Source of the DNA: Cyanophora paradoxa CCMP329
Taxonomy: Eukaryota > Plantae > Glaucophyta
Length of the DNA: 64,000 bases
Assembly: GCA_004431415.1 (NCBI GenBank)
Contig: QPMI01000656.1
Location: 1-64,000, forward strand
Reading direction: 5' to 3'
The position numbers and the translations under genes were made by a program. Numbering within the stretch: position 1 is the first letter of the stretch; every line of letters begins with the position of its first letter. The notes under the pieces are model-generated. The model searched no databases, was not told where the DNA came from, and saw only the letters and a list, made by a program, of their open reading frames with translations. Positions 15,101-48,084 of this stretch are shown piece after piece.

Positions 15101-18100
15101 ATTCTCGAACGCGCTGTACCCCCTCAATCCTTCCCACAGGGCGCCGCGTGCTCGGGCCCCGACCCACCCGTCGCCCTCGAAAACTACTTCCTGGTACCCG
15201 TACCCGACCCGCGGAGTCTGTACCCCCGGCTCAATTCAATCGCAGATTCCCTGGAGCGTGGAAGCGGGCGGGCGGCCGGTCTTCGAGCGCTGCAGAACGG
15301 ACGGCGCGTGCGTCGGCGGCAAGGACAGCGCCTGCGGTTCGCCTTCGGAAGTCCCCCGAGCAACGAAGTCTGAGGGCCGGGCAGGCGCGGGGTACAGCGG
15401 CCTCGTCTGCGGGCAGTGCGCGCAGGGCTTCGGGCAGTCGAAGCCGTTCGGGTGCCAGCAGTGCGTGCCGCGGGGCGGCCTCCTGACGATCCTGGGCCTC
15501 GGGATCGCCGGCATCCTCGCCGTCCTCGTCTTCTTCACCCTCTCCGCCGTCCACTCCGGCCTCCAGGCCCGCACCGGCCCTTTTCCGAGCCCCGCGCCCC
15601 TCACGCGCCCGCCCGCAGCTTCGGAGCCGCCACTCGGTGATGCTCAAGGTGTGCACTCCCCGCGTGCCCCCTTCCCTTTCCTTCGCCCATGACGGGTACC
15701 GCAGATTCTCCTCAGCTACGTGCAGGTCACGGCCTTCGGGCAGGCCTTCGAGCTCGGCTGGCGTGTACCCCCCTGGAACCCCGTGCCGCCTCGCTCTGAT
15801 TGTTCGCCCACCGCAGGCCCGACGTCCTCATGCGCTTCCTCAACGTCGCGTCCACGGTAACCCCCATCCTGCCCTGCACTGAAGAATCCGTTTCTAACCG
15901 CGTACCCCCGCCAGGCGGCCTCCCCGGTCTCGATGATCGTCTCCCTCGACTGCCTCGCCCCCGCCGACGGAGGCTTCGGCTTCTACCGCCAGGTCCGCCG
16001 CGCCCCCTTCTGGATCCTGCACCCCCTTCTCCCTCTCTCAAGCGCTGTACCCCGGCCCTGAAGTTCGTGATCTACCTCTGCATCCCTTTCATCGCCCTCG
16101 CCTACGCCGCGTGCGTCGCTTCCCTGTACCCCTGCACCCGACCTGAATCGCTGTATCCCCAGGGCCGCGTACCTGGTGGCGGCGCTGTGGCGCCTGCGCT
16201 CCGTCCGCCGCTCGGTGCGCCTCTTTTCCGGCTTCCTCTGATCATTCGGAGGCGAGGCGCGCCGCAGGGGGCGGCGGGCGCTCGCGGGGGCAAGGAGGCC
16301 CCCGAGGGGGCGGATGCCGTACCCATGCGGGGGGCCGCAGGGGCGCCCTCCAGCGTGGGGCCCGGGGCGTCTCAGGGGGAGATCGCCCTCGTGGACCTCG
16401 GCAGCCCCTCGGACGCCGCCAGCACCGCCGGCACGGCCACCCCCCGCCCCTCCGCCCTCGCCCTCTCCGCGCCCCGCGCCGGCCGCCCCGGCGGCCTCGC
16501 CCCGCTGAACGCCAAGCCGGACGGCGGGCTCGCCTCCCTCGTGCCGGCCCCCTGGGAGGTCCTCGCGGAGGAGCGCCCTGCGGCGCGCGCCGAGGCGACC
16601 CTCAGCAGCCTCGCCTCCGAGCTCGAGCCCGCCGCCGCGCCCGACGCCGACGCCGGGGCCGCCCCTGAAGCCGGCGCGAGCCTGGGCCTGGGCACCCTCG
16701 CCGCCCCGGAGGCGCGCGCCTACCGCCCCACCCCGGCCGACTACGGTGCGCCTCCTCCGGTCCTCTCCCTTTCGCTGCCCCTTGCGAGGCCGAGGCCGTC
16801 GGCTTGCGCCGCAGGCATCGCGGCGCTCATCGTCTGCATGTACACCGTCCACCCCGCCGTCTCCCAGGTCGGACCCTCGCCCTCCCCCAGACTTCCGAGC
16901 AGGAGCCTGACCACGGCCACGGCGCACCCGGACTTTAGATGGTGCTGCACGCCTTCAACTGCGTGGAGATCGGCGGCCGCCGCTTCCTCCGCCTCGACGT
17001 CGCCGTCGAGTGCGGCTCGCCCGCCTACCAGCAGTACACCAGTGCGCCCCCGCGCAGGCGCAGACGGGGCAGATCCTCCCTCTCTCTTTCTGAGGCGCGC
17101 GGCTGACCGGCGGGCCGGCTCGCGGTCGGCGCGCGCAGTCTCGCTGGGCGTGCCGGCGATCGTGGTTTACCTCTGGGTGGTGCCCCTCGTCCCCTTCCTC
17201 CTCCTCTTCCTCCAGCGCCGCCGCCTCGACCGCGGCCACCTCCGCGTCCGCTACGCCTTCCTCTGCCGCGGCTTCAAGCGCCGCTACGTCTGGTTCGAGG
17301 TCCGCAGCCGCACTAGGACTCCTCCACGCCGTCTCCGCCCGTGCCGTCCCGTCCCGGCCCGAGGCCCCGGCCGCGGCAGGCGTTCAACCTGGTGAAGAAG
17401 CAGCTGGTCATCTTCATCGCGGTCTTCCTCTCGCAGAAGATCATGGTGCAGGGCCTGCTGGCGCTGGGCCTGCTCGTCGCCGCGACCGCGCCCCTCGCCG
17501 AGGCCCGGCCCTGCGAGCACCGCCTCCTCAACCTCCTCGACGTCGTCCAGCCCACCGCGCGCCCTCACGCTTTGCCTTAGCTTAAGCTCTAGCTTAAGCT
17601 CAGGTGGTGACCTTCACGGTGCTCGGGGGCCTCTTCTTCGGGACCCGCTCCCTCGAGGAGGGCGAGGCCTCCCTCCTCTCCGTCCGCCCCCGCCCCCGCG
17701 CCCCCGGCCCGCGCCTCGAGCCCCTTCGCTTTGAGCGAGCGGCCGGCGGGGCGCAGGCGCTGCTGATCGTCGCCAACTGCGGCTTCCTCGTCCTCTGGCT
17801 CTGGCACTTCACGCGGGAGGTCCTCCAGTACGCCCGCCGCCAGGTGCGCGCCTCGGCGCCGTCGCAGTCGCCGTCGCCGTCGCGATCGCGATCGGGCCCC
17901 GTGCATAGTCTTTGATTCGATGTCGGCCGCGGAGGGCGTCGCAGCGGCACGTGGGGAGGGCGATCGCCGCGGTCCGCGCGGCCGCCGCGCAGGCGTCGGC
18001 CAGCATTCGCAGCCTCCGCAGCATGCGCTCCCCGCCGCCGTCCAGCGCTCTGCCCTCCGGATCCCGTCTCTTCGGGTGCGGCCGGTGCTCTCCGCCCATC

Positions 18101-18434
18101 AAAATTGCTTGCGCCCTTATGAGAGTGCAGAGGGAGCGGGGTGTGGCCGGCGCCGCCGGCGCCGCCGGACGATCCCGCATCCGAAGCAGCAGCCGCGGGG
18201 GCCGCGGCCGCGATCGAGAGAGCCGCCCCGCTGCTGGAACCGGTCCTGGACGCCGGGCCGCTGTCCTCGTCCGGTGCGGAAGCGCAGGCGAGCGGCCGGG
18301 GCGCGGCGGAAGAGGCCGGCACGCCGCGCGGCGACGTCGTGCCGTGGTCGTCCATGGCCGCCCCCGCCTCTGCAGTAGTTAGTAGCGCCCGCCGCCGCCC
18401 CAGCGCCCACGAGATCGACGCCCAGGAGCTCTAG
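12163..18434 (+). CDS. Membrane receptor: signal peptide + ANF-receptor/Venus-flytrap domain + Cys-rich (ephrin/TNFR-like) repeats + multi-pass (~7TM) region
   Basis: Hydrophobic N-terminus; VFT motifs SISASAPAFSNKKDY-PAFYSRMVPSD, QGQALARLAFSYGW, DVYGAG, AAFAYDAVWAYARALD, FAGATGPVAFTPEGDR; CxxC repeats (GYSGLVCGQCAQGFG..CQQC); TM segments with SLDC, LRLDVAVEC, RYAFLCRGFKRRYVWFE, RPCEHRLLNLL. The stop at 18434 is tentative. Confidence 0.8.
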
Positions 18435-18902
18435 GCTCTAGCTTATTGCCCATATGCATACGTATACTTCCGGGTTGGCCTCTAACTAAATGCAACAATG
18501 TAAGTGGCTTAAAACAATTTCTCTGGGGGGGGGCCTCGGCCGCGCGCGGCGAGGTCGCGATCGTGCGCGTGCACGTGCCCGCGGCCGGCCGCGCCACGGC
18601 GGAGCCGCCGGCCCGACGGGCGTGGGAGCCCAAATGCATGCGCATGTATAATTCGAAATGCCCCGTCCTCGCGTCTTTCGTTAAACGTTCGTGTCTTTGC
18701 GGTGCGTCCAACGGTCACGAATCACGATTGCCCCGCCTTTGACGATTTGCATTAGCACATCCATACAACTAATGAAGTTGTATGGATGTGCGCCATCGTT
18801 CGCTACGCGCGTGCACGTGCAGGGGCCAGACGCCCCTCGCGTACGCGTACGCCCCTTCCGCAGACTGAATTCGAAGACTTCCGCAGCTGCAGCGCTAGCG
18901 CT

Positions 18903-19395
18903 TGTCGCGGGCGATGGCAAGTCCGGCTAGAGCTTAGCCGGCTGGACCGGGTGCGGCCGCAGGCCGCGGGCCGGAAGCCGGCTAGGCGGGGCCGGTCGCG
19001 ACTTGGCTTGGTGACTTTCGGGCGCAGCCGAATGATTTTCGGTGCAGCGGTTGTTGGGGTTCAGAACCCAAGTCGGAACCCAATTCGGAATCCTAGAACC
19101 GTGAAAGTCCTAGAAAATACTTGCTAGTTTGCAACGCGGGCTAGTATAAGTAGCCGCTGCCCTGCCAAAGTTGTTATTCTTTGTGAGGCGCACAGCCTCG
19201 AAATACTAGCAGCGAAACTCTGCCTCTCTGCGGCTGCACCTTGCCTTAGCAATTAATATTTGGGAGGGCCTTGCATTGAATTGCACTACTAGCTGGGATC
19301 GCATCTCAGGTCTGTTATTAATCTGTTATTAGGCCTCTGGTTAAAACCCCTAGACTATATCTGGGCCTTGCCCGGATTTAACCAGACGCTTAATA
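18903..19395 (+). repeat. 5' LTR (493 bp)
   Basis: Starts TGTCGCGGGCGATGG and ends ...CGCTTAATA; matches 30111-30603; contains TATAAG at ~19145. Confidence 0.9.
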
Positions 19396-19397
19396 CG

Positions 19398-19405
19398 TGG
19401 GGGCT
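19398..19405 (+). promoter_or_regulatory. Putative primer-binding site, tRNA-Pro type
   Basis: TGGGGGCT lies 2 nt after the LTR end and equals the first 8 nt of the known tRNA-Pro PBS (TGGGGGCTCGTCCGGGAT); it diverges after 8 nt. Confidence 0.6.
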
Positions 19406-22400
19406 GCTCAAAATTTTCAGCTATATAGCTAGCTCTTCAAAGCTAGCTGGCCAACCTCTGCGTCGCGATGCGCATAGCCACTGCGCATCCGGAAGTCGTC
19501 GCGTACTGACCAGAGCCTTTGCGCATGGTCGCAACTCCTACTATCAACTCGGCGCTACCTGCTGCGCGGGTGAGCGGACGCTACCGCGCGCCAGCGCTAC
19601 GCGTCGCTTTAAAAGATGCGTACATGGTCGCCCTGCCTGGGCTAGCTACTAGGCTAGCGCACTAGCAGCCGCGGCGTGACGCCGCTAACGGGGCGCCGGC
19701 ATGCGCATGCGCACGCGCGCGCGTACGTCTGCGCCGCGACCAGTGTCTGATCCGGGCCTGCTCGACGCAGCGTTCGCATCTCAGGCCTAGGCCGGATCGG
19801 ATTCTGCGGCGCGAGCGCACTCGAGCTCTACAGGCGTGGCATCGCCGGCCGCGGCGGCCGACGGGCGCCGAGCTCGCCGATTCGACGCCGAGCTCGCGGG
19901 GGCCGCCGGGCGCGCTATAGCTAGCTCCGATTTATGCTTGGCCTCACGTGCTTTTTCTTCGCCGAAAAGCTCGCATGAATTATATATAGATCACGAGAGT
20001 ATTGTTTCTCTACCTACTTCTATGACGTGATCTATTCTGCCACGCGTACGACGGCTACTGCCACTCGGCGGGCTAGTTTCTATTCTATTATTAATTCGCG
20101 ACTATATTGCTGCGTGCATATATTGTGTTTGGCAGTCGCGGGGAGCACGGTTTTGCGGCGCAAAACCGGAGAGAACCTTCCACCGTGTTGGGATCACGGT
20201 TTATCAGTTCTCTCAAGCCGAGGATACCGGCGGATGCTTCCCCAGGGGTCCACATCAAGTGCTTTTTTCTGACGAGCTACTGCGAGTCTACAATTGCTGT
20301 ACCCCTCTGGGTTAGTGCCCGATTTCTTGAGGGGCATCTGGCCCAGGCCTCTCACGTGGTCGGCCGCAGCCTTCACGTGATTCGGAGGCGGGGTACAGCG
20401 ACCGCTGGTAAGTACAGCGGTTTGAGACGGAGGCAGGAAATAGTTGGTGGGCCGGCGGGCTTCGCCCGCCGTGCACAAACCAGACCAAGGCCAGGCCTCA
20501 AGCAGCAGCAGCAGCTCAGCAAGTAAAAGAAGCTTTTAAGCTGAAGCACTCGATAGTACTTGTGGAACTATCGGGGGGCAGCATCATGGCAAGCTTATGG
20601 CGAGCCTGTGCGTGCTCACGATCAGTCGCTATAGCCATCTTTATAAAAAATTAAATTTAATAGTCACTGATCATCGGATAGATATATCGATGTCGCTCGT
20701 AATGTGAAAACGGATATTATATTCCGAGATCGGAATCCGGGACTGCCGCGTTGACCGCGGCTGAAGAGCTTGAGCTCGATGTATCGTAGAAAGTCTGAAC
20801 TCGAGCTCGCGATCGCACGTCAACGTCGCGAGCTCGAGACCGCCGCCGTGCAGCTTGTCGCGACTCGCGAGAGAGTTCACCAGCTGCATCTTTCGAGTTC
20901 GTGCGCCAGCTTCATTAATATTAGGAGCTCAAACAGAATCCGGCAACGCCCGTTCAATTCTGAAATTTAGTTCGAACGTTAACCCCCGCACGCGAACGCG
21001 GGCGATCTGGTGCACGTGGCCGCAGTGGTCACGGGGGCACGGGGGGTCGTTGAGATCACGGTATCCCCCCTGTCGCAATTCATGATTGTGAGCGATATCA
21101 TCCGATGATCGTTTTTGTTGCCACGTTCTAAGTTGACGTCGCCACGGGCACTCGACACAATGTGGGCTCATCACAGCATCGCGAGATCTAGATCTAGATC
21201 TAGAGGACAGGCACTCTAGATCTGCCGCTCCGCGGCCGATCTCGCTCATCGGGGTCGGAGTATCGATATCGACAGCATAGTATCGCGATCGATATCGTAG
21301 AATCGATATCGATGCAGATGGATTGCAATTGCGCAATTGCGCCGGCGCACTGCGCGGCAGTGTACGTGTTCATTTTCGTCGGACGGTGCAATTAATGTTG
21401 CCGTGCGTGTTTGCATCGTTGACAATTGGCGCAGTGCCAGGCCCCGCGGCCGGGCCCTGATCATGATCATGAGGGCTTGGGTGCACACGTACGCGTGCCG
21501 GCGTGGCCGCGCGAAAGACTCCGGTCCGTCCATGACCAGGGGTGCAATTGCAATTGCAAGCATACTACTTTATATGACCGTCGGACCAAAATCATATACT
21601 ATGATATGCGCGCGTTACTATAATGCTGTATATGATCTTGTGCATAGGCATTAATTACCGCCGGGCCGGGGTCAATCGGCCAAGGCTACCAAGATCGCGC
21701 CGCAACGCGCGCTGCGGCACGCGTACGTCCCGTGATCCTAGAGTCCGACGGTCCTGATGCAAGCTCACGCCGACGCCGTTTGAGCTTGATTACGACGCGT
21801 ACGGGTGCCGGCCGCGGGCGCTTGATCATGAATTGTTGCCCGGAGGCTATATATATATAGCGATATATATATGACGTACGTTGACGTCCGATCGCGATCC
21901 GAAAACAGCCTGGCAGCTCAATTTGCAATGCCAACTAATATATGTATCCGATGACCGCATGCGCGCAAGGGCGCTGCGGCCGGCGTCCACGTCGCGTCGA
22001 CGTACGCGTCGGATTACGACGGCCCCGGCCTTCCCAAGCTGAAGGGAGGACGTGCGCCGCCGGGCCGTGCAATTTTTGCAAGGGACGATCGCGAGATCGC
22101 CGGTTCGCGTTCGAATTCAACGGTTGGCAGTGACCTTTATGACGCGCGCGGCGCGGACCGACAGCTGGAACCGCAGGGGTGACTCAGGAAGTGGTCTTCT
22201 TAGCGTTGTGCATGTAAAATTGCCATAAGAGAGAGACTGAGGTCTCAAGGGCCGGGCCGGGGCCCGGCGCCGCCCGGGGCCGGGGGGGCGCGAAGCTGTG
22301 AATCGATTGCAAGATCTAGAGTCTAGATCTGGGTACCGCCGAGTCGCCGACGTGCCGACGCCGGTACTGGTATGCGCGCGCGCATGTGGCGGCCGCGGGA

Positions 22401-23821
22401 CCGTATAAGTACTACGGTAGTGCGGCACAATAAGTCTTATTTGATGATCGATATCGATCTGGACGATCAATGATCATGATTGCGATCGTATTGCGAGCAA
22501 GTTCGAGTGCTGCGCATGCGGCGCGCGATTCTGAATATTGCGCATGCGGCGCGCGATCGCACAATTGATCATATTTGATCATGAATGGTTGATCATGATC
22601 ATCGGATCGCACGCGAAGCTCACTGAGTCACTGACGTCGACGAGTCAAGTCGACTCGGATTGATATATATATATCCGAACATCGGAAACCCGCGCCGCTC
22701 CTGTGTACAGCGCACGTGTACCGCGGCCGTGCCATGGCCAGGTGTGCGGATCGTGGGGCCACTTCAAGATAGAGTGCATGTGCATGTATACGTATGCGCC
22801 ACCGAAATTAACTTGCGTTGCAGTATCTGCATACATATATATATATATCCGGCCGCCGGGCACAGCTACTAGGCTAGATCTAGATCTAGATCTAGATCTG
22901 CTGACCGCGGGGTGGACGCACACACTCGCGATCGGCGGCAGTGCCGGTAGCGCTCAGCGTCGACGTCTAATCTAGCGCTAGCGCTCGCGATCGCCCGGCG
23001 CCGCCGGCCGAAAGGAGCTCGAGAAAAAAAAAATTCGGTGACGCTGCATGCGCATATGCGCATGCAAATGCGTCCGGAGTCCGGATGGAAAGTTGACTCG
23101 CAATCATATGCATGATCATGAATTCGAATATATGTAAGAGCCGCGGCGGTCGGCCGCGGTGGGCGCGCGGCCTCGCCTAAGTTAACGTTCACGTTCGCGA
23201 GTTCGGCGTGCTCCGAGGCTCAGCGACCGTCGGACGGCTTGTCGGCCGGTACATGCATATAATAATAATGGGGGCTCGGCAGCCTCGGCGGCTCCGAGGC
23301 CGAGGCTCACTAGATCTAGATCTGTTGCCAGTGCCAGAACTTGTGGGCGTACTGCGGCGCTTATATATATATTGGACCGTGATGTCGGGGGAGGGCAAGC
23401 CCGCAGGGTGAGCCCGCAGACCAGGCTATAGGTTCGCTGCGCGCGCGCCCCTGCCGCATGCGCAACCGTGCGAGAGCTAGGGTCAACGAGCCTTTGTATT
23501 GTAGCGCTCAGAAGCACGTACGCCTGCCACCAAGGCAGGCAAGGCGGAGGCGGCGCGGCGGGCCACCTGGCCCAGGGGCTGCAAGGGAGAGGCGGCCACC
23601 AGTGCCGCCTCTTGGCCGCCCCGCGAGGCTGCGCCTGCGCCGCGGCGCTGGGCGCGCCGCCAAGAAGAGCCGCCGCAGCCGCCCTGCACTCTAAGACTGC
23701 GGGGTAAATGTCAGGCGAGGCTGTGCCTGCGTCACGGGAAAGGGGGGCGCGCACCCAGAAGCCCTTCGGCCGCTGCGCAGTCTGCCGCCCAGAAGAAGAA
23801 GAGGGGCCGCCCCAGGCCACT

Positions 23822-24617
23822 CCGCAGTCTGAAACTGCGGGGGCCGCGTCAGGCGCGGCTTACGCCGAAGAGGAGAGAGGGGCGCACCAAGCAGGTCGCC
23901 CCGGGCCGCCCCGCAGTTCGAAAACTGCGGTGGGCCGCGTCATCAGGCGCGGCTGCGCCTGCGCCGAAGAGAAGAGCGGGGCGTTCACCAAGAGGCTCGC
24001 CCCGGGCCGCCCCGCAGTTCGAAAACTGCGGGGGCCGCGTCAGGCGAGGCTGCGCCTGCGCCGAAGAGAGAAGGGGGGCGCACCGAGAAGTTCGCCCCGG
24101 GCCGCCCCGCAGTTCAAAAACTGTGGAGGCCGCGTCGGGCGCGGCTGCGCCTGCGCTGAAGAGGGGAGAGGGGCGCACGCCGAGTGGGTGGCGCCGGGCC
24201 GCTCCGCAGTCTGAAACTGCGGGGGCTGCGTCGGCGAGGCTGCGCCTGCGCCGAAGCGAGAGGGGGGGCGCACGCGAGAAGGGACGCCCCAGGCCGCTCC
24301 GCAGTTTGAAACTGCGGGGGCCACCTCACAGAGAGAGCGGGGCGCACCGAGAGGGGCTGCCCCAGGCCGCTCCGCAGTCTGAAACTGCGGGGGCCACCTC
24401 AGAGAGACAGAGCGGGGCGCACCGAGAGGGGCCGCCCCGGGCCGCTCCGCAGTCTGAAAACTGCGGGGGCCACCTCAGAGAGAGAGCGGGGCGCACCGAG
24501 AGGGGCTGCCCCAGGCCGCTCCGCAGTCTGAAACTGCGGGGGCCACCTCAGAGAGAGAGCGGGGCGCACCGAGAGGGGCCGCCCCGGGCCGCTCCGCAGT
24601 CTGAAACTGCGGGGTCC

Positions 24618-24648
<31 letters not shown>

Positions 24649-25730
24649 CGGGGCGCACCAAGGGGGGCCGCCCCGGGCCGCTCCGCAGTCTGAAACTGCG
24701 GAGGCTGCGTCAGGCGCGGCTGCGCCTGCGTCGGAAGAGGAGAGGGGTGGCGCACCAAGAAGGTTCGCCCCAGGCCGCTCCGCAGTCTCAAACTGCGGGG
24801 GCCACCTCAGAGAGAGAGCGGGGCGCACCAAGAGGGGCCGCCCTAGGCCACTCCGCAGGCTGAACTGCGGGGGCCGCGTCAGGCGTGGCTGCGCCTGCGC
24901 CGAGAGAGGAGCGGGGGGGCGCACCAAGAAGGTTCGCCCCGGGCCCTCCGCAGTCTGAAACTGCGGGGGCTGCGTCCGGCGCGGCTGCGCCTGCGCTGAG
25001 AGAGGAGAGGGGGGCGCACCAAGAAGGTTCGCCCCGGGCCCTCCGCAGTCTGAAACTGCGGGGGCTGCGTCGGCGAGGCTGCGCCTGCGCCGAAGCGAGA
25101 GGGGGGGCGCACGCGAGAAGGGACGCCCCAGGCCGCTCCGCAGTTTGAAACTGCGGGGGCCACCTCACAGAGAGAGCGGGGCGCACCGAGAGGGGCTGCC
25201 CCAGGCCGCTCCGCAGTCTGAAACTGCGGGGGCCACCTCAGAGAGAGAGAGCGGGGCGCACCGAGAGGGGCCGCCCCGGGCCGCTCCGCAGTCTGAAACT
25301 GCGGGGGTCACCTCAGAGAGAGAGCGGGGCGCACCGAGAGGGGCTGCCCCAGGCCGCTCCGCAGTCTGAAACTGCGGGGGCCACCTCAGAGAGAGAGCGG
25401 GGCGCACCGAGAGGGGCCGCCCCGGGCCGCTCCGCAGTCTGAAACTGCGGGGGCCACCTCAGAGAGGGAGCGGGGCGCACCGAGAGGGGCCGCCCCGGGC
25501 CGCTCCGCAGTCTGAAACTGCGGGGGCTGCGTCAGGCGCGGCTGCGCCTGCGCCGAGAGAGGAGAGGGGTGGCGCACCAAGAAGGTTCGCCCCGAGCCCT
25601 CCGCAGTCTGAAACTGCGGGGGCCACCTCAGAGAGGGAGCGGGGCGCACCAAGAGGGGCCGCCCCAGGCCACTCCGCAGTCTGAAACTGCGGGAGCCGCG
25701 TCAGGCGAGACTGCGCCTGCGCCGAAGCGA
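23822..25730. repeat. Tandem array of 23 hairpin-containing units (short 73-75 bp, long 95-101 bp) inside the LTR element
   Basis: Core CCGCAGT-CTGAA-ACTGCGG (or loop variants) at 23822, 23911, 24012, 24107, 24204, 24299, 24372, 24447, 24521, 24594, 24683, 24780, 24853, 24948, 25043, 25138, 25211, 25286, 25359, 25432, 25505, 25601, 25674. Confidence 0.95.
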
Positions 25731-27123
25731 TAGGGAGGCGCGTACCCGAGGGCTCGCTGAAGGCCGTCCGGCCGCCAGGATTCGGGCTGAGCCCGCTGCG
25801 CACAGGTGAGCGCACCCTCAAGCCTGGCTTTCTAGACAGCTGATCGCCCGAACGCGCCCAGTTTGCTGCGTTCAGCATGTGAGCTAAGCTCAGTGAAGGC
25901 AGGGGCGTCGCGGGCGCACCGTGGGCAGGCCAGACTGGCTCGACGGCTGCCGCCGGAGCGGGCTCGACGGCTGGCGCCGGAGCAGGCTCAACGGCTAGCG
26001 CCGGAGCATGGGAGAACTGCGGGATGCAGCCATCAATCGGCGCCCCAGAAATGGAGGGAAGGCGTCCGCAGCCGTATAGGCGCGCGCGTGCCGGCAGGGA
26101 GGCCAGGCAAAACGGGAGGGGCTCTGGGCTGCAGCCGCTATTCGGCGCCCCGGGCCGCTACTCGGCGCCCAACTCCGCGGGGAGGGGAGGTCGCAGCCGC
26201 GAGGGCGCGCTTGCGGAGGCAATCGGGCGAGCCGGGTGGGCGCCCGCGCCATATGCATGGCCTGCGGATCGAATTCCGTGAATCGAACGATCCAAAAGCA
26301 GGCGGACTGCCTCACGAGGGCGCGCGCGTAGGGGAGGGAGATCGCGCCCTGTCACGAACGTCGGAGCCAGCGGCGGGTCCGTGACGCCGTGGTGAGTCGG
26401 CGCGATCTCTGCGCGATCGGCTAATCGTTAGAATCTCATCATGACTGGAAGCCGCTGGGCCGACGATGGCGGCCGTCCGCGGCTCTCAAGCATCGCACGA
26501 GCGGGTCGAACGCCGAATTTGGCGCTGGTACGAACGCCGAATTTGGCGCTGGTACGATCGTCCGATCGTCCCACGCCGCGTCCGCTCTGTGCTGCTGCTG
26601 CTGCGCGAGGCGATTCCTCGCACAGATCGTAGTAAAAGATTGAAGAACAAGGCGCGCCGCCCGCGAGCGGGGCGGGCGGCGCGCCTCAGACGGACTGGCG
26701 CTCTCAGGGGCGCCTTGCGTCAGTGATGCAATCAATAGCAGGCGGTACCCGTGGCGGCTCGGACGGGTACGTCTCGCATTCATAATTAATATTTTGTTTT
26801 CTCGTGCGCGATCACGATCGCAGCCGAGCGCCGGCCGCGGCCGCGGTTACGATTTCCGGGCGCGCGCCGGTAGCTGAGCTTGTCGGCTGTTTTGCACTGA
26901 CGGCTTGCACAAATCTTCGTCTACGCTTACGCGCATACGACGTGGCTCGGGCCCGGGCTCCGGGGCGCCGTCGACGTCGATCATCGCGCGCCGCGGCGCG
27001 CGGGCGAGGAATCGGAAGCGCTAGAGCTAGCGCTAGATCTAGAACTAGTCGGATCGCCGGGGGCGGACCTGCTCGGCGGTTCGCTGCGGAATTCTGCTGC
27101 GGCGGACGTGTTTTGAGTTCGGA

Positions 27124-28320
27124 ATGGCTCCGAATACGCGAAGCGGCGGATCCGGAGGCGCGGGCGCTAGTGGCGGATCCGGGGGCGGCAGCCAGGGCAG
27201 TGGCGGGCCCGGGGCGGCGGCTGCAGCTGCGCATGCAGCAGCCGTGCCCGCGGCCGCGGCGGCGGCCGCTCCGGCGGCAAACGCGATGCCAGCGCTAGCT
27301 CCGGGGCCAGCGCCGGTCGCGCCAGTGGCGCCGGTCGCACCAGCGGCGGCTGGGGCGCCAGTAGCGATCGGGGGCCAGCAACCAGCTGCGGCGGCAGCTG
27401 ACGCTGCGTTGGAGGCGCTGAAGAGCAACCTGGACATGCATACACGGCACCGCGAGCTGAAAGAATTTAAGGAGCGAATTCCGGCTTTAACAAATACTGG
27501 CGTTCTATCGTGGATCGTATCGCTGGAGCGCCTGGCAACTTTTATTCAGCCGCCGAAATTTCTGGAGCCGGACAAGATAGTAGCGGAGCTCGCAATGTCT
27601 TCGCTGCAGCGCTCAGCAAGTGATGATTTGACTGGAGCATTCTCAGCGACGGTGCTGGGTGCTATGGCGTCGAAGGCGGCGGGCGGTGAATTTGAGATGA
27701 CGTCGTGGGCAAAAATTCGTGAGCATCTGATCAGCTTGGTGCCTGGCAATAAATTCGAGCTGCTGAAGAATACGATCAAGACGGCGAGCCAGCATTTCTC
27801 AGCTCTAAACAACCCCACGGAGCTGGATGCTCAGGCTCTTATCAATAACGTTGTTTTATTTCGGCACCTGCTTCAGCTGCAAGACTCGTGTCCGGACGAG
27901 ATGTTGATCGCGGAATTAATGTCCCCGGACGCGATCACTTCGCCGGCAATGGTCAAGCTCACAAGCAGAATCACGGAGGGCGCGCGTACAAATCTGGCCG
28001 AGTGGGGTCGCGAATTCTTCAGTCGAGTTCGGTCCCATAACGAGCTGGAAATGAGGCTCCAGCGGGTGAGGGCCAGCGGTGGATTTTCGGACGCGTCAGT
28101 CTCTCGCGTTGCGGGGGGTGAGCTTGGCAGCAGCAGCAAGAAGCAGAAGACGGGCGGACAGCCTCGTTGGTGTGATGAATGCGAGAGCGGCTCGCACAAC
28201 ACTGTCGTCTGCATCAAGCGACTTCAGCGGGAGCTGGAGGAGATGCGGGCGCAGTATTCGACCTGTCAGCAGGAGCTCGAGAAATATCGGAGCTCCAGCA
28301 GCCTGGCGGGCGCGACGTAA
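27124..28320 (+). CDS. gag: Retrotransposon Gag-like protein (398 aa), intronless, CCHC zinc knuckle followed by a coiled coil
   Basis: MAPNTRS start, Gly/Ala linker, helical capsid-like core, CDECESGSHNTVVC = C-X2-C-X4-H-X4-C; intronless with less biased codon usage than host genes; lies between LTRs. Confidence 0.85.
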   Translation: MAPNTRSGGSGGAGASGGSGGGSQGSGGPGAAAAAAHAAAVPAAAAAAAPAANAMPALAPGPAPVAPVAPVAPAAAGAPVAIGGQQPAAAAADAALEALKSNLDMHTRHRELKEFKERIPALTNTGVLSWIVSLERLATFIQPPKFLEPDKIVAELAMSSLQRSASDDLTGAFSATVLGAMASKAAGGEFEMTSWAKIREHLISLVPGNKFELLKNTIKTASQHFSALNNPTELDAQALINNVVLFRHLLQLQDSCPDEMLIAELMSPDAITSPAMVKLTSRITEGARTNLAEWGREFFSRVRSHNELEMRLQRVRASGGFSDASVSRVAGGELGSSSKKQKTGGQPRWCDECESGSHNTVVCIKRLQRELEEMRAQYSTCQQELEKYRSSSSLAGAT

Positions 28321-30110
28321 AGTACACGCCACGGCGGTTCGGTCTCCGCCTGAGCAGAAATTAAAAGACCAGCGGTGGAGGAGTTTGGATTTAATTCGTC
28401 GCGAAGAGGGGTGGGCCCTGCGACGTGGCGGCGTGTACTTGTAATTTTTCAGCTGCAGCCGGAGTTCAAATTGTGAGCGGAACAGCTGCAGCTTCAATTT
28501 GCGGGGCTGGATGTTGCACCTGCGAAGGCGGCGGCCTTTCTTCACAGTCGATCGCGAGGCTGGTGGCGAATCCGAAGAAGGCGTCGCTCCGTTCCGGTGA
28601 ACCGGCGTCCAGGCTGGAGATGCGGACCTGCCCGAGGCCAGGGCAATACAGGAGGGCATCGGATTCAGCTGTGGGCGGGTGGTGTCAGCCGTCGAGGGCG
28701 GGAGGCCCGAGTCCAAGCTAGAGGCACGGAGCTGCTCGTGCCAGGATGGTGCTCAGGACAGCAAACGGCCGGTCGGCACCCAACCGAATAGAGACCGGAA
28801 TCGGCCCTGCATCAGACGGACGCGAGCTCAGCGTTATCGTCGCCGCGGGGTTACTAAACTCAAATACTAGAACTCGAGGACGGGCCGACGGAGTCTGGCA
28901 ACCGCGTGGCCGGCGGGAGGGGCAGCTGGAAATCCGCGCCCCAAGAACCCCTGCTGACTACAGCTGGCAACGGCTCTGGTCGTGCTCACGTGCTCGGAAT
29001 AAAGGAGGGGACGACAAAGGAACGTGGGAACCTCTCGGCTTTCGGGCGGCGCGTAGGGCCCTACGAGCCCCCGTTAGCTGTGGATGGAGCCGGTTCAAGT
29101 CGTGCTCCTGACCCGGCGGGGGATAGAGCATCTCCGGCGGACATTCTGGGTCTTCGGACTCGATGTGCAAGTGCACCTACCGCCGGCGGGCACACAGCAA
29201 CCGTCAACTTAGCTGTGCGTCCGACCGCAATTTAATTCTCGGGTCGAAATCGGCGGAGGATCTCGTCAGGCGGACTGAGAACAAGAGCGGAAATTTTGGA
29301 AGTGCTCGACGCGGCGGCGTTCGCGCTCTGATGCACAGGATTCCCTCTCTTCTCGCCGCCTACAGATTCAGACGCAGGCCGGAGGGGCCAGACTTCGCGC
29401 GATGTCGAGGGCGCAGTTTCGTCTGCAAGGCCGACATCAATCGCGAGTCCACGGGGGCGCAGCCTAGTCAATGGGGCTGACCCTCAAGTCTCGGTTGGGG
29501 CTTCGGGCCGTGGATCAAGGGCAGTGCCTGCGGTCCCGGACGCTTCAGCTCGAGAGAGGGCGGGTGGGGTCGACGTCCCAGCGGATGGCCCACCGTCCGA
29601 GGGGAGAGCTGTGCAGCCTGGCAGCTGCAGCTTCGCAGTTGTACATATCGTGTACATATCAGCCGCAGCGCGCGGCGAGCTCGAGTAGCTACGGATAGAG
29701 TAGCGAGCTCGAGAAGCATTCGGATTTCACAGCTGCAGACAGGACCAGCTGTGCGACGTCTGGATCATTTCTAGGTCCAACGGAAGCTTAGGGCAAGCCT
29801 TGGAAATATTTCTTTGCCAAAAGTTGGCTCGGAAACGATTCGAAATATTTTTTTCGCAACGATGGACATATATTTCTGATAGCATTAGACGTCTACATAT
29901 TTATTTTATTGTAGATAGCGCAGCCTTCGTGCTGCTAGGGCTATAGTGCAGCCTTCGTGCTGCTAGGGCCGTCAGGGCGTTAGAACGCCTCGGCCACCTT
30001 TTCTTGTACATAGTCGGGATCGTTTTCGATATCGGACTCAACGTTTTGCTGCGACGAACGTCGCGGGAGGGATGGAGGCGCCGAGGACGGCTTTTCTCTG
30101 CTGCGACGAA

Positions 30111-30603
30111 TGTCGCGGGCGATGGCAAGTCCGGCTAGAGCTTAGCCGGCTGGACCGGGTGCGGCCGCAGGCCGCGGGCCGGAAGCCGGCTAGGCGGGGC
30201 CGGTCGCGACTTGGCTTGGTGACTTTCGGGCGCAGCCGAATGATTTTCGGTGCAGCGGTTGTTGGGGTTCAGAACCCAAGTCGGAACCCAATTCGGAATC
30301 CTAGAACCGTGAAAGTCCTAGAAAATACTTGCTAGTTTGCAACGCGGGCTAGTATAAGTAGCCGCTGCCCTGCCAAAGTTGTTATTCTTTGTGAGGCGCA
30401 CAGCCTCGAAATACTAGCAGCGAAACTCTGCCTCTCTGCGGCTGCACCTTGCCTTAGCAATTAATATTTGGGAGGGCCTTGCATTGAATTGCACTACTAG
30501 CTGGGATCGCATCTCAGGTCTGTTATTAATCTGTTATTAGGCCTCTGGTTAAAACCCCTAGACTATATCTGGGCCTTGCCCGGATTTAACCAGACGCTTA
30601 ATA
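30111..30603 (+). repeat. 3' LTR (493 bp)
   Basis: Matches 18903-19395; followed by CGCT (TSD). Confidence 0.9.
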
Positions 30604-31769
30604 CGCTAGGTGACGGACCGTCGGACCCCCCCCCCCCCACCCCCCCTCTCCCCCCCTCTCCCCTCCCTCCCCCCCCGCCTCCGCCCCCCCCCCGCCCCCC
30701 CCGCCTCCGCCCCCTCTAGATCTCCCCCCACCCCACCGGTACCCGCCCGCCCCCCCCCCCCCACCCCGGCCCCCCCGGGCCGCGGCCGGGGCCGCCCCCC
30801 GCCCCCTTTTTTTAAATTTCCCCTCCGAGGCTCCACTTCGAGCGGAAGCGATCACCCACGTGCACATCGATCTAGCTAACGCTCACAGACTCTATATATA
30901 GACCTCACTATTTAAAATTATTGCAAGGGGGGGTACCCCCTAGGCCTCCCTTGCTCCCCTGGTGAGTTGGTGCGGCGTACTTTCTGTGTTAGCAATTTTT
31001 GTAAGATGAGATTCTTTGCATGCGCTCTCGTTTAGGTGTGATCGCATCGTAGCCGCTGCGAGCGGCGGAAAAAAATGCAAGGGCGGGGCTGAGCAAACAT
31101 GTCGAGGTCGCGCCCCACCTGCTATCGCTATATGCGCCAGACCACGTGCTCCTGATTGCTCTCGATGCGCTCTACAACTTTTGCCATACATGCCCGGGCT
31201 CGAAAAGCGGCGCGCGGCACGCTAGGCCGCCTCAAGTACCTGTTGTACCGGGCGCCCAAAAAAACGCTCCTGAGAGTTTGTGGCGATTGCTGGGTACACG
31301 TACCTAGCACCTCCAGCAGCGTAGATCTAGCTATAGATCTAGAGGTGGTCGAGGTCGCGGAGCCACGCTAGAGTGCAGAAAGAAGGCGCCCGCTACGCAG
31401 CGTTCCGGTGAGCACCCGGGCCGCGGCGTTTCGCCCACCCTCTAGCTCTCGGTGTACATGTGACGGACTCCGGTTCAGGCGGACTTCAGCTCGGCGATGT
31501 CAAGCCCTTCAAGCGCAAGTACGGGGCGGATCACCACTCGCACGCCTCGGCCCGCGGCCGGACTGGATGTATATGCGTGGCTGAAGCTTGACCCGCGGCC
31601 GCGGCCGGCACGCCGTACTAGCTGTACTACGTTAGCGGAGGTTGGCGGCGTCGCAGTATTCCCAGCTGCTCCTAGTACGCCGCGCCGGGCTGCTTCCCTG
31701 CCCGCTGCTCCCAGCTGCTCCGCGCGCCCGCTGCTTCAGCAGCTGCTCCCTAGGCCTGCCCGTCGCCCC

Positions 31770-32330
31770 GCCCGCTGCTTCAGCTTCGACGACTCCAGGT
31801 TCGCCCCGCCGGCGCCGCTGCTTCCGCGCGCATCACCCGGCCGACCTCCCTGGGCCCCGCGCCGGCGCCGCCGCTGTCCGGGGCGAGCTGACGCCTCGGC
31901 CCGCGCACACAGGCGACGCGCAGGGCCCGGTGCCACCTGCCGCTCCGCCCGCTTCCTCGCCCGCCGCCCGCCGGCTGCTTCAGCTTCGTCGACTCCAGGT
32001 TCGTCCCGCCGCTGCTGCTTCGCATCTGACCCGGCCGCCCCCGCTGGGCCCCGCCCCCGCACGGCCGCTGTCCGGGGCGAACTGACGCCTCGGTTCTGCG
32101 CATGCGCAGGCTACGTGCAGGGCCCAGCGCCATCTGCCGCTCCGCCCGCTTCCCCGCCCGCCGCCCTGCCGGCTGCCTCAGCTTCGTCGACTCCAGGTTC
32201 GCTCCGCCGCTGCTGCTGCGCACCTGGCCCGGCCGCCCCCGCTGGGCCTCGCCCCCGCACGGCCGCTGTCCGGGGCGAACTGACGCCTCGGTTCTGCGCA
32301 TGCACAGGCTACGTGCAGGGCCTGGTGCCC
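31770..32330. repeat. Roughly three-copy tandem repeat, ~200-bp period
   Basis: CAGCTTCG(A/T)CGACTCCAGGTTCG recurs at ~31781, ~31981 and ~32179, each followed by CCGCTGTCCGGGGCGA(A/G)CTGACGCCTCGG. Confidence 0.85.
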
Positions 32331-33414
32331 CCTTTCTCTCCTCCGGATCCCGCTTTCCCGCCCGCCGCCGCCCTCGCCTGCAGCTGCCCGCCCGCCTGGT
32401 GCCGCCGCCCGCGTCGCCACCCCACCTACCCGCCTCGCCACCCCGCCCGCCTCGCCCGGCCGCCCGCCTTGCCTCTCTAGCTGCCCCCTCCGCCCCCCTC
32501 CCCTGCGCCCCCCGCACCACTCCCCACCAAGTACCCTGCAATGTGTACCAGTACCCCCCCTTGCACCTCCGCGCGCGGCCCGCACTTGCCGCACTTGCAC
32601 AGGGCCGGGCGCGGTCTGCTAGTATTATCAATACCATATTGCAATATTAATTGTCTACATCTTGCAATTGCGAGCACGTGCCGCGCTAGTGGCACAGCCT
32701 ATATATAGCTAGTGCTAAGCTTAATGTTCTTTGCATGCACGCAACCGTACCCGACTCGGCGACAGAACCAAATTGCACATTGCATTGGAAATTAAACCGC
32801 AAAGCTGAATTTGATTGGGTCACAGAGTCAAGTCGCAGAGCTTGTACTTCACATATGTACGCGATATACGGATACTGTTATGGGATAGATAGAACTCAGG
32901 AATTCGAAGGAGATTATGAAGGTTCTGTACTGCATGAAATCGCAAGGCTAGGTAGATTACAAATACCAGCGCTAGCAATTGCAAGGGGGCAAATGAAACA
33001 GATTCGAATTGAGAATCGAAAAAGCGTGTGAGCATCAGCTTGGCAAGCTGCGATCGAAAAAACTGCACTGCAGGTAAAACGAGGCTCTCAGGCTCTCAGG
33101 CCTCGAGGCCTCGAGCTCCGCCCAACGCCGACGCCGGCGCCGGCGCGGGGCAGGCAAAGGTAACTAAAGACAGTAAACGGCAGGCCTACACCGCGGGCCG
33201 GGGTTGATTCGGAGGTCGCGTCATCGATGGCGTGACGTGGTACAGCGGGCCGGGGTGCGGGCCCCGGAAGGATGGACTCCGGGAGATCGAGATGGGCCGG
33301 GAAAGAGAAATTGAAGACGGGCTCTGGGTGGGGATGCAATTGAATCGGGAGCTCGAGGGTGGGAGGGGTCCGGAATGCATATGGGGGGAAGGCAGAGGCG
33401 CCGGCCTAGGGCGC

Positions 33415-33864
33415 TCAGGCCCGAGCGATGGCGTCGGCACCGGCGGAGAAGGCGAGCACGGCCGCGGCCCGTGCGGCGCGGCTCTCCGTCAGGTCAACGA
33501 CGGTCGCCGCCGCGAGGCCGGCCGCCGCGATCGCGGCACCCTTGCGCAGCTGCGGCGGGACGCCGGCCGCCAGGCCGCTCGCCACCGTCGCGAGGTGGAT
33601 GCGCGCCGCGGCGTTGGCTGCGGCCGCGCGGGCCGCCGGGGACGGGCCGTGCGCGTGGTGGGCGCTGTGGGTCTTGTGCCCGTGCGCGTCAAGAGACGAG
33701 CGGGCCCGGCCGCCGCTGCCGGAGATGGTGAAGGCCGTGGCAAGAAGAGCTCGATTCCCTGCCATTTCTGCGCTTGCGGACGCGGCTCGGGGAGCAGCAC
33801 GATCTGACGCCATCGATGCGTCAGCGCCGATCGGCCCGACGCTCGCGGGGCGCGGCGTAGACAT
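33415..33864 (-). CDS. Hypothetical small Ala-rich protein (149 aa)
   Basis: ATG-initiated ORF with host-like GC3, a His-rich patch and a hydrophobic C-terminal half; no recognisable motif. Confidence 0.3.
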   Translation of the reverse strand: MSTPRPASVGPIGADASMASDRAAPRAASASAEMAGNRALLATAFTISGSGGRARSSLDAHGHKTHSAHHAHGPSPAARAAAANAAARIHLATVASGLAAGVPPQLRKGAAIAAAGLAAATVVDLTESRAARAAAVLAFSAGADAIARA

Positions 33865-35017
33865 CGCACCTCGTTTGATTTAGACGGTGGATAGGCTTAA
33901 AGCTTCGCGAAGCGGGCGAAGCTGGAGGACGCTGGATCGGAGCTGTATCACCGGACCGGCGAACGAGCACGTTTGATTTGATCAATTGCAAGCTGACTAC
34001 GGGATGATGGCCGCGTCGGTGCTAGCCGTGCGAACTAGCTGCGCTGAGAGCTCGAAGCAGTTTGCGGCTAGGCGAACGGGGGCGGCGGCAGAGGCGGCGA
34101 GCTCGAGCTTCGGCGGCCGGCGGCGAACGAGAATGTGCTGACCGCGGCCGATGGCGGAGCCAGGGCGCGGAAAGCACGCGAGTTTCGGCCGCAGCGGTCG
34201 GTCAGTTACGCCACCGCGTCGCGTCACGGTTTCACGAACCGTCGCGAGCTCGTACCCGCTTTTAAATCTGCCCCCCATTCAGTATGCTCACCGCCGAGTC
34301 ACCGGGCGCCGGCCGCGGCGCCGCGGGCGGGGCCGCCGGGGCGCCGCGGCGCCGCCGCGCCGCTGGCGCTAGCGCTGCTCACGATCAGCAGGGCGCCGCT
34401 ATGTATACAGAGCTATATATAGCTATAGCTAGCGCTGCTCAGGCTCTCATCATGATCAGCCGGGCGCCGCTAGCTGATCAGCCTCGGAGCCCGGCGACCT
34501 TGAGTTAACGTTGCCGCATGCGCGCAGTGCGAATTGCTGCGCAATTGCAATACGCATGCGCGGCGCTGGCGCACGTTTTCGCGCGAGCTCGAGTCCTAGG
34601 GCGCCGCGGCCGGCAGAGGTGCAGGTACATGCGCAGCTGCAGGCGCGTTCGCTGCCAGCTGCGCATGCATGCGAAGACATCGATCCACGCCCGTCGCCAC
34701 TCCTCGATGCCGCGCCAGGCTGCTTTGTGCAATGGTAGGATTGTGTCCGTCGGAGACAGGAACACGCGAAAATCGAAGCGGCCTAGGCTGAGAATAAGGT
34801 GGCGGGGCCAGGGGCCGAACAAAACACGTCGGAACGCGAAAGTGAGAGGAAAACTGTATGTGTGGTCATATGGACTATTTAAAATCTGCTGCAGAATGTA
34901 CGTAGAAACAGAGTAGCTATGAAAATAGAATATACGCTTGGAGGCGCGGGCGGCGCGGCTAGGCCGCGTGGGTGGCCGGACAGGTGGGCGAGTCGCGCTG
35001 TTGCCTGTGGGCGGGGG

Positions 35018-39792: not shown

Positions 39793-42083
39793 ATGCCGCC
39801 GAAGAAAACTCGGAGGGCAAAGCGCGCCCGAGTGGAGGAACCGGAGGCGACTTCAGAGCCTGAGACTGAGCCTCGCCGATCATCGGAACGACTCTCTCGC
39901 GGTGACACGTCGGCCGCGGGCGAGCTCGTCGTTGCACAGGAGGAGGGCGACTCGCTGGAGCACGGAGCGGCGTACAGAAAGCGGCTGGCGAGTATACTCG
40001 AACGCGTGCGGAGCGGGGCGTTGGCGGGCTGCCGCGAGATCAGCCTGGACGGCTGCGCCATCGGCGGCTACGGCAGCGGCGAGTGGACCAAGGAGGACAT
40101 CGATGCGAGCCTGCTTGCTGCTAGCGACGTGGCGGGTGAGCCCTCGCTCCACCGCTGCGCGCACGCCACGGCCGTTGACCCCTGCGTGCTGCCCGCGCGC
40201 GCGGGGCGCCGGCCCCGCAGAGCTGCTGGCCCTGGCTGCGAAGGCGGGGCCGCTGGAGCACGTCCACTTCGGCGCCGGCTGGTGGCGCTGGCCCCGCGAG
40301 GAGGAGCAGCGCGAGAAGGGCGTCGCCGAGCCCCTCCCCCTCAAGGCCGTCGCCCGCTCCTTCCTGGCGGCGCTCGCCGGCGCTCGGCTCTCCACGCTCA
40401 GCTTCGAGGACCCGACGGCGTCGCCTCAGAAGCAGACGGAATACGAAGACGAGGAGGACGACGACGAGCACCTGTGCCGCGCCGTGATCGACGCCGCGGC
40501 GCCGGGCTGCTTCCCGCACATCTCGGAGCTGCGCGTCGGCCACACCTACGGCTGCCGCCTCCGGAGCCCGCAGGCGGTGCGCCTCGCCCCGGCCCGCCGG
40601 CCCGGCCGCGCCGCCTGCCTCGAGCTCCTGATCATGACTGCCGGCCGCGAGCGCAGGCGAAGCTGGCGAAGGTCTGGCCGAGCCTGAAGAAGCTCTCGTG
40701 CGGCGTGCTGGGCGGCGGGGCGCTGGAGAAGCTGGCCAGGCTGAGGGCGCTGGAGGAGCTGCGGGTCACGGCCTGGTTCGACGACGACGACGAGAGCTCG
40801 GAGGGCCTGCTGGAGGCGGCGCTCGGGAAGCTCGGGCGGCGGGCGCCGAGCGCGCGCGCGCTGCACCTTCTCTCCTCGGAGGAGCTCCGCGTGAATCTCT
40901 TCGACCTGGAGGGCGGCGGGGACCGCGTGCCGGACCTCGTCGGCTGCGGCCCCCGCCCGTTCCTCGTCGGCCCCGACTGCCTCAAGGCCCTCCTCCGCCT
41001 CTCGCACCTCGAGGAGCTCTCCCTCGGGGTGCCCGCCGCCCCCGCCCCCGCCACGCCGAGCCGGCGGCTCGTGATCACGCTCGGCAGGTCGAGGACTCGA
41101 GCAGCGGCCTCCTGCCCCGGCTCGCCTCCCTGCAGAAGCTGCGCACCCTCAAGCTCGACCTGCCGGTGCGCGCCCCTTACAGTAGCCATAGACCTCCGAA
41201 AGGCGCCGCGATTCGTCTCCTCCTGATTCGATTTCTCCGTCGAGCAGAAGCAGACCGCTCGCAATGGGGGCAAGGCCCTGTTCGAGGGGGCTGCCAAAGG
41301 GCTGAGGGCCCTCCCCGCGCTCCGCCTGCAGCTCCTGGTCGACAACTACGACGAGCACTGCGCCTTCTCGATCAACTCCGCCGGCCTCGCCCGCCTCGTG
41401 CGGGACGCGCGCCCGATCCTCGACGAGCTCATCTTCAACCACCTAAACCTGGGGGAGGACTCCGCATCCAGCCTCTTCAGGGCGCGCCCCCTTTAGAATC
41501 GAGCCGACCCTCGCGCGCCCCGGCCCTCCCGGCCGCGCCGCCTCTGACGTCGACGCCCCTGCAGGAGGTCGCGCGGGGCGGGCCGAGGCTGCGGCGCGTG
41601 ATGGTTGTCAGCGAGCTGGACGGCGGCCTGCACCGCTACCGGCCCCTCCTCCGCCTCTCCAAACTCTACGGCGCCACACCGGCGATGGCCAGCAAGGGCA
41701 AGCGCGAGGAGGACGAGGAGAACGAGGCGGACGAGGAGGAGGAGGAGGAGGAGGACGAGGAGGGGGACGAGGAGGAGGAGGAAGACGACGACACGGAGGA
41801 GGGGGAGGAGGAGGAGGAGGAGGGGGAGGAGGGGGAGGAGGAGGAGGAGGAGGAGGAGGATAGGTACTCGATCGAAGAGGAGGAGTGTTCGAGCGAGAAG
41901 GAGGGGGCGGAGAAGGCTCGGCCCCTGCCGGACTTCCGCCTGCACTTCGTCTTCTACACCGACAATCCCGAGAGCACGTGCAGGAGAGTCCGCCGGTGGG
42001 CGCGGGCGGAGCGCGTCCCGATGCTGCTGACCGTCAACAACAAGAACCGCAAGCTGGAGGGGAACTCGGGAGTCTCGGGGTGA
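39793..42083 (+). CDS. RNI-like LRR protein with basic NLS-like N-terminus and acidic tract
   Basis: MPPKKTRRAKRAR start; repeats VWPSLKKLSC, LRALEELRV, LSHLEELSL, LQKLRTLKL; poly-Glu/Asp at 41705-41860. Confidence 0.65.
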
Positions 42084-47866: not shown

Positions 47867-48084
47867 CGCGCGTCTTCCGCCGTCGCTCGGCCAACGCCCG
47901 CAGACCACGTCGCTCCCGCGCCCGCGCTGATCGTCTCTTTAGCTATGTTCGATGCAGCTGCCGATCTGCAGCTGGCGGCGCTTGGGCTGTTTGCTGCTTC
48001 TTGCTCTCCGTTGATCACCGCGTACCCCCCGCCAAGGTCGAGACCGTCGAGTGGCCGAGCCTCACCGCGGTCGAGCTCCTCGGA

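Follow-up and report, generated by a model that had tools for sequence, protein, structure and literature searches.

We have identified in the glaucophyte Cyanophora paradoxa CCMP329 what is probably a young, single insertion of a pol-less long terminal repeat (LTR) retrotransposon in the nuclear genome. It has the size of a large retrotransposon derivative (LARD) and bears a gag-like gene. The element lies in the first 64,000 nucleotides of contig QPMI01000656.1 (GenBank assembly GCA_004431415.1, forward strand), and this whole stretch is referred to here as the window. An earlier note on the same DNA had described a recently mobile LTR element that encodes only Gag. Our analysis recovered the LTR anatomy, a Gag-like open reading frame (ORF) without pol and the signs of a young insertion, and did not recover a capsid fold.

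Terminal repeats, coding content and age

Canonical LTR retrotransposons have TG...CA termini, a 4-6 bp target-site duplication (TSD), a primer-binding site (PBS) that is complementary to a tRNA, and a polypurine tract (PPT) abutting the 3' LTR. In the window, two direct repeats at 18903-19397 and 30111-30605 are identical at 495/495 positions, as had been claimed for the LTRs, and the flanking sequences diverge immediately outside them. The repeats are spaced 11.2 kb apart and enclose an interior of 10.7 kb. The left LTR boundary is fixed at 18903, and the whole element measures 11,701-11,703 bp. Each LTR starts with TGTCG and ends with ...TTAATA, or with ...ATACG at maximal identity. If the LTRs end at 19395/30603, as the match requires, the tetranucleotide CGCT flanks the element on both sides. 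The chance of such a 4-bp match is estimated at ~0.02, allowing for boundary and length choices and for GC-rich composition. The pair, which the earlier note had called as a 4-bp TSD, is consistent with a target-site duplication, short of proof. With these ends, the extra identical CG would form the 2-nt spacer before the PBS at the 5' copy and the first two bases of the TSD at the 3' copy. The insertion point falls in a host intergenic palindromic repeat, AGCGCTAGCGCT. Next to the 5' LTR stands a PBS-like site, TGGGGCTGCTC, which would pair with a tRNA 3' end of ...GAGCAGCCCCA. Toward the 3' LTR, a near-copy of the interior/3'-LTR junction may be left from an earlier site of plus-strand priming or from a small duplication.

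In order to survey coding content, the interior (19398-30110) was split into 138 stop-free pieces of >=55 aa in six frames, and each was scanned against Pfam. Protease, reverse transcriptase (RT), RNase H and integrase domains were found in 0/138 pieces, and no recombinase domain was found among them. At Pfam sensitivity, therefore, the element has no pol, in agreement with the prior claim that it lacks protease, RT and integrase ORFs. The intact 398-aa ORF that had been placed ~7.7 kb after the 5' LTR was confirmed there, and it accounts for 1.2 kb of the interior. From base composition at 61% GC, the chance of a 398-codon ORF staying open is estimated at ~5e-6. GC content at third codon positions is 0.66 in gag vs 0.98 in the exon of a host glycolate oxidase gene, and this codon usage would mark the gag ORF as foreign to the host genes. 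Transposable element (TE)-like codon usage and the lack of CpG depletion fit a young mobile element.

The element is likely to have integrated recently, given the identical LTRs, the intact ORF and CpG observed/expected (o/e) ratios of 0.87-1.40 in a genome whose repeats are CpG-methylated (PMC12344493). No nested element with repeats of its own was found in the interior, so the 11.7-kb unit probably integrated in its present form. Nor does the interior hold long direct or inverted repeats beyond a tandem array described below, and split-direct-repeat (PAT/Ngaro) and nested-TE readings were rejected on that account. A DIRS/PAT-like element was likewise rejected: the terminal repeats are of the plain direct kind, what lies past the 3' repeat differs from what precedes it, and no recombinase domain was found. 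Self-BLAST of the element against the 64-kb window returned no further copies, which argues that it is not a local tandem artefact.

The Gag-like protein begins with a disordered, A/G-rich N-terminal part (residues 1-92), which is followed by an all-alpha core (~93-330), an atypical CCHC motif and a C-terminal coiled-coil helix. PHROGs gave no meaningful match to the ORF. A word search with the whole ORF was empty, probably owing to the low-complexity N-terminus; when restricted to residues 95-398, it found P0001, a 522-aa protein from Logan run ERR10034898 (E 2e-80, 50% identity over the core). No publication that mentions this run accession turned up in the literature. An exhaustive profile search of 1.84 billion protein representatives added only P0006, a 475-aa protein from a metagenome assembly (ENA ERZ27275054) that is 25% identical over ~190 aa (pairwise E 3e-12). 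The remaining matches of this search involved only the zinc-knuckle columns contributed by P0001. A further candidate, P0005, shares the knuckle region and not the core, and was rejected as a member. Judged by sequence, the family of the Gag-like protein is an orphan one, P0001 and P0006 being its only relatives. A profile hidden Markov model (HMM) of the family, run against the six-frame translation of the window with stops as X, recovered only the gag ORF, and no second or decayed gag.

In both relatives, an alpha-helical core is followed by a canonical Pfam zf-CCHC, then by a linker and a second CX2CX4HX4C close to the C-terminus; the tail is helical and charged. The window protein has in common with them the alpha-helical core, the CX2CX4HX4C of the C-terminal part and a tail that is charged or forms a coiled coil. 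It differs in the canonical zf-CCHC that both carry between core and C-terminal knuckle; it aligns with the relatives at both ends, and ~150 residues that include this knuckle are missing. Since the canonical knuckle occurs in both relatives, the simplest explanation for the gap is that the window protein lost it in frame, as a derived state. The description of the protein as a Gag with a CCHC knuckle thus holds for the CX2CX4HX4C spacing; the motif is the atypical knuckle near the C-terminus, and the canonical knuckle of the nucleocapsid is deleted. Residues 93-398 were modelled with AlphaFold from the three-sequence alignment. The model (predicted local distance difference test, pLDDT, 74) is all-alpha with ~11 helices, the C-terminal one being long. 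A model of the core alone scored lower (pLDDT 61), and its Foldseek search was no more informative. In a profile search of PDB sequences, zinc knuckles were the only matches.

Table 1. Features of the element and of its flanks, with positions in the window (o/e, observed/expected).
Feature	Position	Strand	Remarks
FMN (flavin mononucleotide)-dependent dehydrogenase gene exons	1330-3045	+	left flank
Putative TSD, left copy CGCT	18899-18902	.	3' end of host palindromic repeat AGCGCTAGCGCT (18891-18902)
5' LTR	18903-19397	+	repeat identity ends 19397; integrated end probably 19395 (...TTAATA); GC 54.5%
TATA-like TATAAG	19145-19150	+	within 5' LTR
PBS-like site TGGGGCTGCTC	19398-19408	+	2 nt past LTR end; opens with TGG, as expected of a PBS
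Non-coding segment	19409-23648	+	~57% GC; tandem self-complementary hexamers; CpG o/e 1.40
Possible canonical zinc-knuckle relic CGSWGHFKIEC	22745-22777	+	sense strand of element
Minisatellite array	23649-25735	+	23 units; + strand purine-rich
GC-rich non-coding spacer before gag	25736-27123	+	holds two 24-bp mini-repeats
Donor-like CAG|GTGAGC	25804		candidate splice donor only
T-rich tract then AG	9 nt before gag ATG		candidate acceptor only
Gag-like ORF, 398 aa	27124-28320	+	intact; sole conserved ORF; start 7,727 nt past 5' LTR
Atypical C-terminal CCHC CDECESGSHNTVVC	28171-28212	+	CX2CX4HX4C spacing; sole such motif in six frames of window
3' non-coding region, expected pol location	28321-30110	+	no domain matches
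AT-rich stretch	~29790-29915		in 3' non-coding region
28-bp repeat, two copies	29915-29969		in 3' non-coding region
Near-copy of interior/3'-LTR junction	30047-30067 vs 30099-30119	+	20/21 identical; 52 nt upstream
Only purine-rich tract	30065-30090	+	20 nt upstream of 3' LTR; directly after junction near-copy
3' LTR	30111-30605	+	same sequence as 5' LTR; probable integrated end 30603
Putative TSD, right copy CGCT	30604-30607	.	followed by ~150-bp C-rich tract
Pre-insertion (empty) site			predicted from flanks: ...AGCGCTAGCGCT-AGGTGACGG

The leader and the possibility of a defective copy

Several results weigh against a mobile element that encodes a Gag. The LTRs run from TG to TA instead of TG...CA, and no PPT abuts the 3' LTR, the preceding 20 nt being only 35% purine. 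There is no tRNA gene in the window to pair with TGGGGCTGCTC; the tRNA-Pro-like PBS proposed earlier thus stands as a TGG-initiated, PBS-like site. Pfam returned neither a Gag family nor zf-CCHC for the 398-aa ORF, and of the nucleocapsid knuckles only the atypical CCHC has been kept, the canonical one being gone. A structure check had been advised for the protein; it revealed the all-alpha core, and Foldseek searches of PDB and BFVD with models built from three sequences found no capsid-like fold (best E 0.05-0.2, TM <=0.25) and no match to retroviral, Ty3, Arc or copia capsids; with so shallow an alignment, this outcome counts little against a capsid. The 4.4-kb contig of P0001 speaks in favor of such an element: gag starts at 1771, and the next ORF begins 10 nt past the gag stop in another frame and runs off the contig. 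This ORF is presumably pol, as in the gag-pol order, and an ordinary gag-pol layout probably exists in the Gag family. The contigs of P0006 and P0005 (~2.5 kb each) contain no pol. A further point against is that only a single copy of the element was seen, within the window. Exact DNA patterns and related loci, sought in metagenome and viral contigs, gave no matches. In collections without the host genome, exact-protein look-ups with Gag and three host ORFs returned no second copy or empty site, and the metagenome and viral contig scans retrieved no solo LTR or pol-bearing partner.

The leader between the 5' LTR and gag opens with more than 4 kb of palindrome-rich DNA. Palindromic 6-mers in 19398-23500 number 322, three times the expectation from dinucleotide shuffles (108 +/- 11), and 8- and 10-mers exceed their expectation even more strongly. 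The densest palindrome stretch of the window lies at 21-23 kb. These palindromes consist of the tandem motifs (AGATCT)n, (TGATCA)n, (GCAATT)n, (ATCGAT), (GCATGC), (AT)n and (CG)n. Like motifs occur in unrelated host spacers at 33-35, 42-46 and 48 kb and at the insertion site AGCGCTAGCGCT, and the whole right flank lies above shuffles, with palindromic 10-mers at ~2x expectation. Such self-complementary motifs look like a genome-wide habit of Cyanophora spacers. Since palindromes are found in host spacers too, their abundance characterizes the non-genic DNA of this genome in general; it is heightened here, but sets no special leader apart. The "palindrome-riddled leader" described earlier therefore survives as an excess, and not as a peculiarity of the element. 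As a separate observation, the host non-genic stretches 33000-35000, 42000-46500, 48000-49000 and 18000-18902 are rich in TCATGATCATGA, GCGCATGCGCATGC, AATATTAATATT, GCGTACGCGTACGC and (GC)n.

TBLASTN searches with P0001 and with P0006 both weakly touched 22721-22777 (+ strand), which translates as ...PCHGQVCGSWGHFKIEC... and holds the motif CGSWGHFKIEC. This motif resembles the P0001 knuckle CRNCGEYGHFARHC, and the pattern CG..GH....C occurs once in the six frames of the window vs 0.04 expected. The family HMM misses the motif at 22745-22777, and no remnant of the core was found upstream of it. The site may be a decayed canonical knuckle, a weak and post hoc hint, from similarity to the P0001 knuckle, at older gag remains in the leader.

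The alternative that survives best is a one-off defective copy, in which aberrant reverse transcription or recombination would have lost pol and gained or expanded leader DNA, leaving a dead end. We hold this to be unlikely, though it deserves serious consideration. It is favored by the single copy visible in the window, the conventional organization of the P0001 contig (little sequence upstream of gag, and an ORF directly behind it), the loss of the canonical nucleocapsid knuckle from Gag, the absence of a PPT adjoining the 3' LTR and of a CA terminus, and the compositional mosaic of the interior, the first 4 kb of which resemble host spacer. The possible decayed knuckle at 22745 points the same way. 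However, an intact 398-codon ORF between identical LTRs fits a template-competent element, and a single sighting covers the 64-kb window alone, so it is no evidence of low copy number. Given the short upstream region of the P0001 contig, the odd layout may belong to this copy or subfamily only. The unrecognized layout with a long leader that had been proposed is present in the window element, whereas the P0001 contig suggests a short leader and a downstream ORF.

A more far-reaching hypothesis holds that the element represents a glaucophyte-specific LTR lineage, whose Gag, with its second C-terminal CCHC and coiled coil, is unlike known retroviral, Ty3, copia and BEL capsids; the element would be a mobile gag-only parasite, and its long leader a family trait in RNA handling. 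We regard this combination as doubtful.

The hairpin array and the identity of the ORF

The array upstream of gag comprises 12 short units (73-77 bp, two hairpins) and 11 long units (95-97 bp), which carry a third hairpin, CAGGCGCGGCTGCGCCTG. It contains a higher-order duplication of ~839 bp (24160-24459 vs 24999-25298, 95% identical), and so consists of two large blocks that mix short and long units.

It is quite improbable, in our assessment, that the long leader and array act as a functional structured RNA (in packaging, dimerisation, translation control or protein binding) and define a new type of element. Such a role would agree with the presence of two to three stable hairpins in every unit, with the position of the array upstream of gag in the sense transcript, and with one-sided stem changes that are all G-C to G-U on the + strand, a pattern which fits RNA structure and equally C-to-T mutation. 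However, the units fold only modestly better than shuffles (z-scores -1.65 to -2.6), and folding of the antisense strand is about as good as that of the sense strand. No compensatory stem changes were found in the array except for one pair, which arose artificially when the two types of unit were aligned with each other. Near-identical units and the ~839-bp duplication are typical of unequal crossing-over, unrelated host spacers share the palindrome richness, and Rfam gave no match at the gathering threshold or at E up to 1. In our reading, the array is a GC-rich minisatellite of an ordinary sort that lies within the element. The modular hairpin array of the earlier note is thus upheld as 23 units with 2-3 hairpins each; selection on its structure is not, given modest z-scores and no true covariation.

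Tandem-repeat arrays occur in the untranslated regions of plant Ty3/gypsy LTR retrotransposons. Compared by description only, those arrays and the present one are minisatellites in the non-coding interior of an LTR element, evolving by unequal exchange; the window array differs in lying upstream of gag and in being built of GC-rich hairpin modules of two types.

The least probable alternative is that the ORF encodes some other CCHC/coiled-coil nucleic-acid-binding protein, captured or domesticated, and that the repeats are two unrelated LTR copies or a duplication around host DNA: the absence of a Pfam Gag domain, of a structural match to retroviral, Ty3, Arc or copia capsids and of more than three family members in 1.84 billion representatives would suit it, but the ORF lies in sense orientation between identical LTRs with a 4-bp flank match and a PBS-like site, its codon usage differs from that of host genes, and its relatives carry a retroviral-type CX2CX4HX4C after an alpha-helical core, one of them with an adjacent downstream ORF.

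Proposed mobilization, related classes and host context

For the pol-less LTR retrotransposon that we favor, we propose a full-length RNA that runs from a start downstream of the 5'-LTR TATAAG into the 3' LTR, where it ends. RT and integrase would be supplied by a separate autonomous element that recognizes these LTR ends and the PBS, and the Gag-like protein would be made from the element's own RNA. From the likely start of transcription to the gag ATG there are 75 ATGs, so translation of gag by scanning of the full-length RNA is unlikely; a spliced or internally initiated transcript would probably serve instead. The interior is pictured as a mosaic of non-coding DNA around gag, which would consist of palindromic microsatellite DNA resembling host spacers (4.2 kb), a minisatellite of 2.1 kb that unequal exchange has enlarged, a GC-rich spacer and, at the former pol site, 3' sequence of 1.8 kb. 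Gag itself would be derived, having lost ~150 aa with the canonical nucleocapsid knuckle and retained the atypical C-terminal CCHC and the coiled coil.

The closest described class is that of terminal-repeat retrotransposons with a GAG domain (TR-GAG); in size and in its amount of non-coding DNA, the element matches a LARD. TR-GAG elements (Chaparro et al. 2015; PMC4350172) are <4 kb; gag occupies most of their interior, and they have TG...CA termini, a 5-bp TSD, a PPT and a Gag that is recognizably Copia- or Gypsy-like. TR-GAG-like structures have already been reported in algal genomes (PMC4350172), which limits the surprise at the element. The window element resembles them in being LTR-bounded, in its PBS-like site and TSD, in having Gag as sole ORF without pol, and in its presumed trans mobilization. 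It departs from their definition in size (11.7 kb, with gag 7.7 kb from the 5' LTR), in its TG...TA ends, 4-bp TSD and lack of a PPT at the 3' LTR, and in similarity to known GAG domains, its Gag being an orphan without a Pfam or fold match; its host, moreover, is a glaucophyte. LARD elements (Kalendar et al. 2004, as summarized in PMC4350172) are given in that summary as non-autonomous, >4 kb and without coding capacity. As so summarized, they share with the window element a non-autonomous LTR structure of >4 kb and a long, largely non-coding interior. In contrast to that description, the window element has retained an intact ORF of 398 aa that has conserved relatives, so the LARD definition fails as well. 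Without pol, the element is not an autonomous LTR retrotransposon of the Copia, Gypsy or BEL-Pao kind. The earlier suggestion of a gag-only element, set beside the TR-GAG and LARD elements of land plants, is accordingly borne out in the lack of pol and the presence of gag; the size is that of a LARD, and neither definition fits in full.

LTR elements make up 1.77% of the C. paradoxa genome and unknown repeats 11.5%, with little or no repeat expansion (PMC6704402). Glaucophyte transposable elements are almost undescribed, and a literature search found no paper devoted to glaucophyte LTR elements. Gag-bearing, pol-less LTR elements of this sort, with an orphan Gag family, are so far undescribed for the glaucophyte lineage; the general kind is already known. 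The identical LTRs and intact ORF suggest that at least one LTR lineage moved recently in C. paradoxa, and the element points to an autonomous partner that should persist in the genome. The orphan Gag offers a handle for finding a lineage-specific retroelement family, and a test case for whether a Gag can diverge past current profile and fold searches. If the layout is common to many copies, it would extend gag-only non-autonomous LTR elements beyond the short TR-GAGs of plants.

In the left flank, the exon at ~2356-2613 (+ strand) of the FMN-dependent dehydrogenase gene is 99% identical to the C. paradoxa peroxisomal glycolate oxidase (UniRef A0A2P1M9I7), and the next-best matches are those of other glaucophytes, at 78-83%. 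Origin of the window from C. paradoxa, or from a very close relative, explains its GC content of 70-80%. Directly downstream of the insertion lies a C-rich low-complexity tract of ~150 bp (30626-30777), in which long C runs are interspersed with T, G and A. Further along the right flank, a 198-bp tandem repeat (2.8 copies, 87% identity, 31758-32322) lies inside a spurious-looking 327-aa ORF at 31497-32480. A long ORF on the reverse strand (51787-54006), in a region of ~80% GC, contains a cyclic-nucleotide-binding domain (Pfam E 2e-7). Among other ORF pieces of the flanks, two match ApaG/DUF525 and one matches a C3HC4 RING finger.

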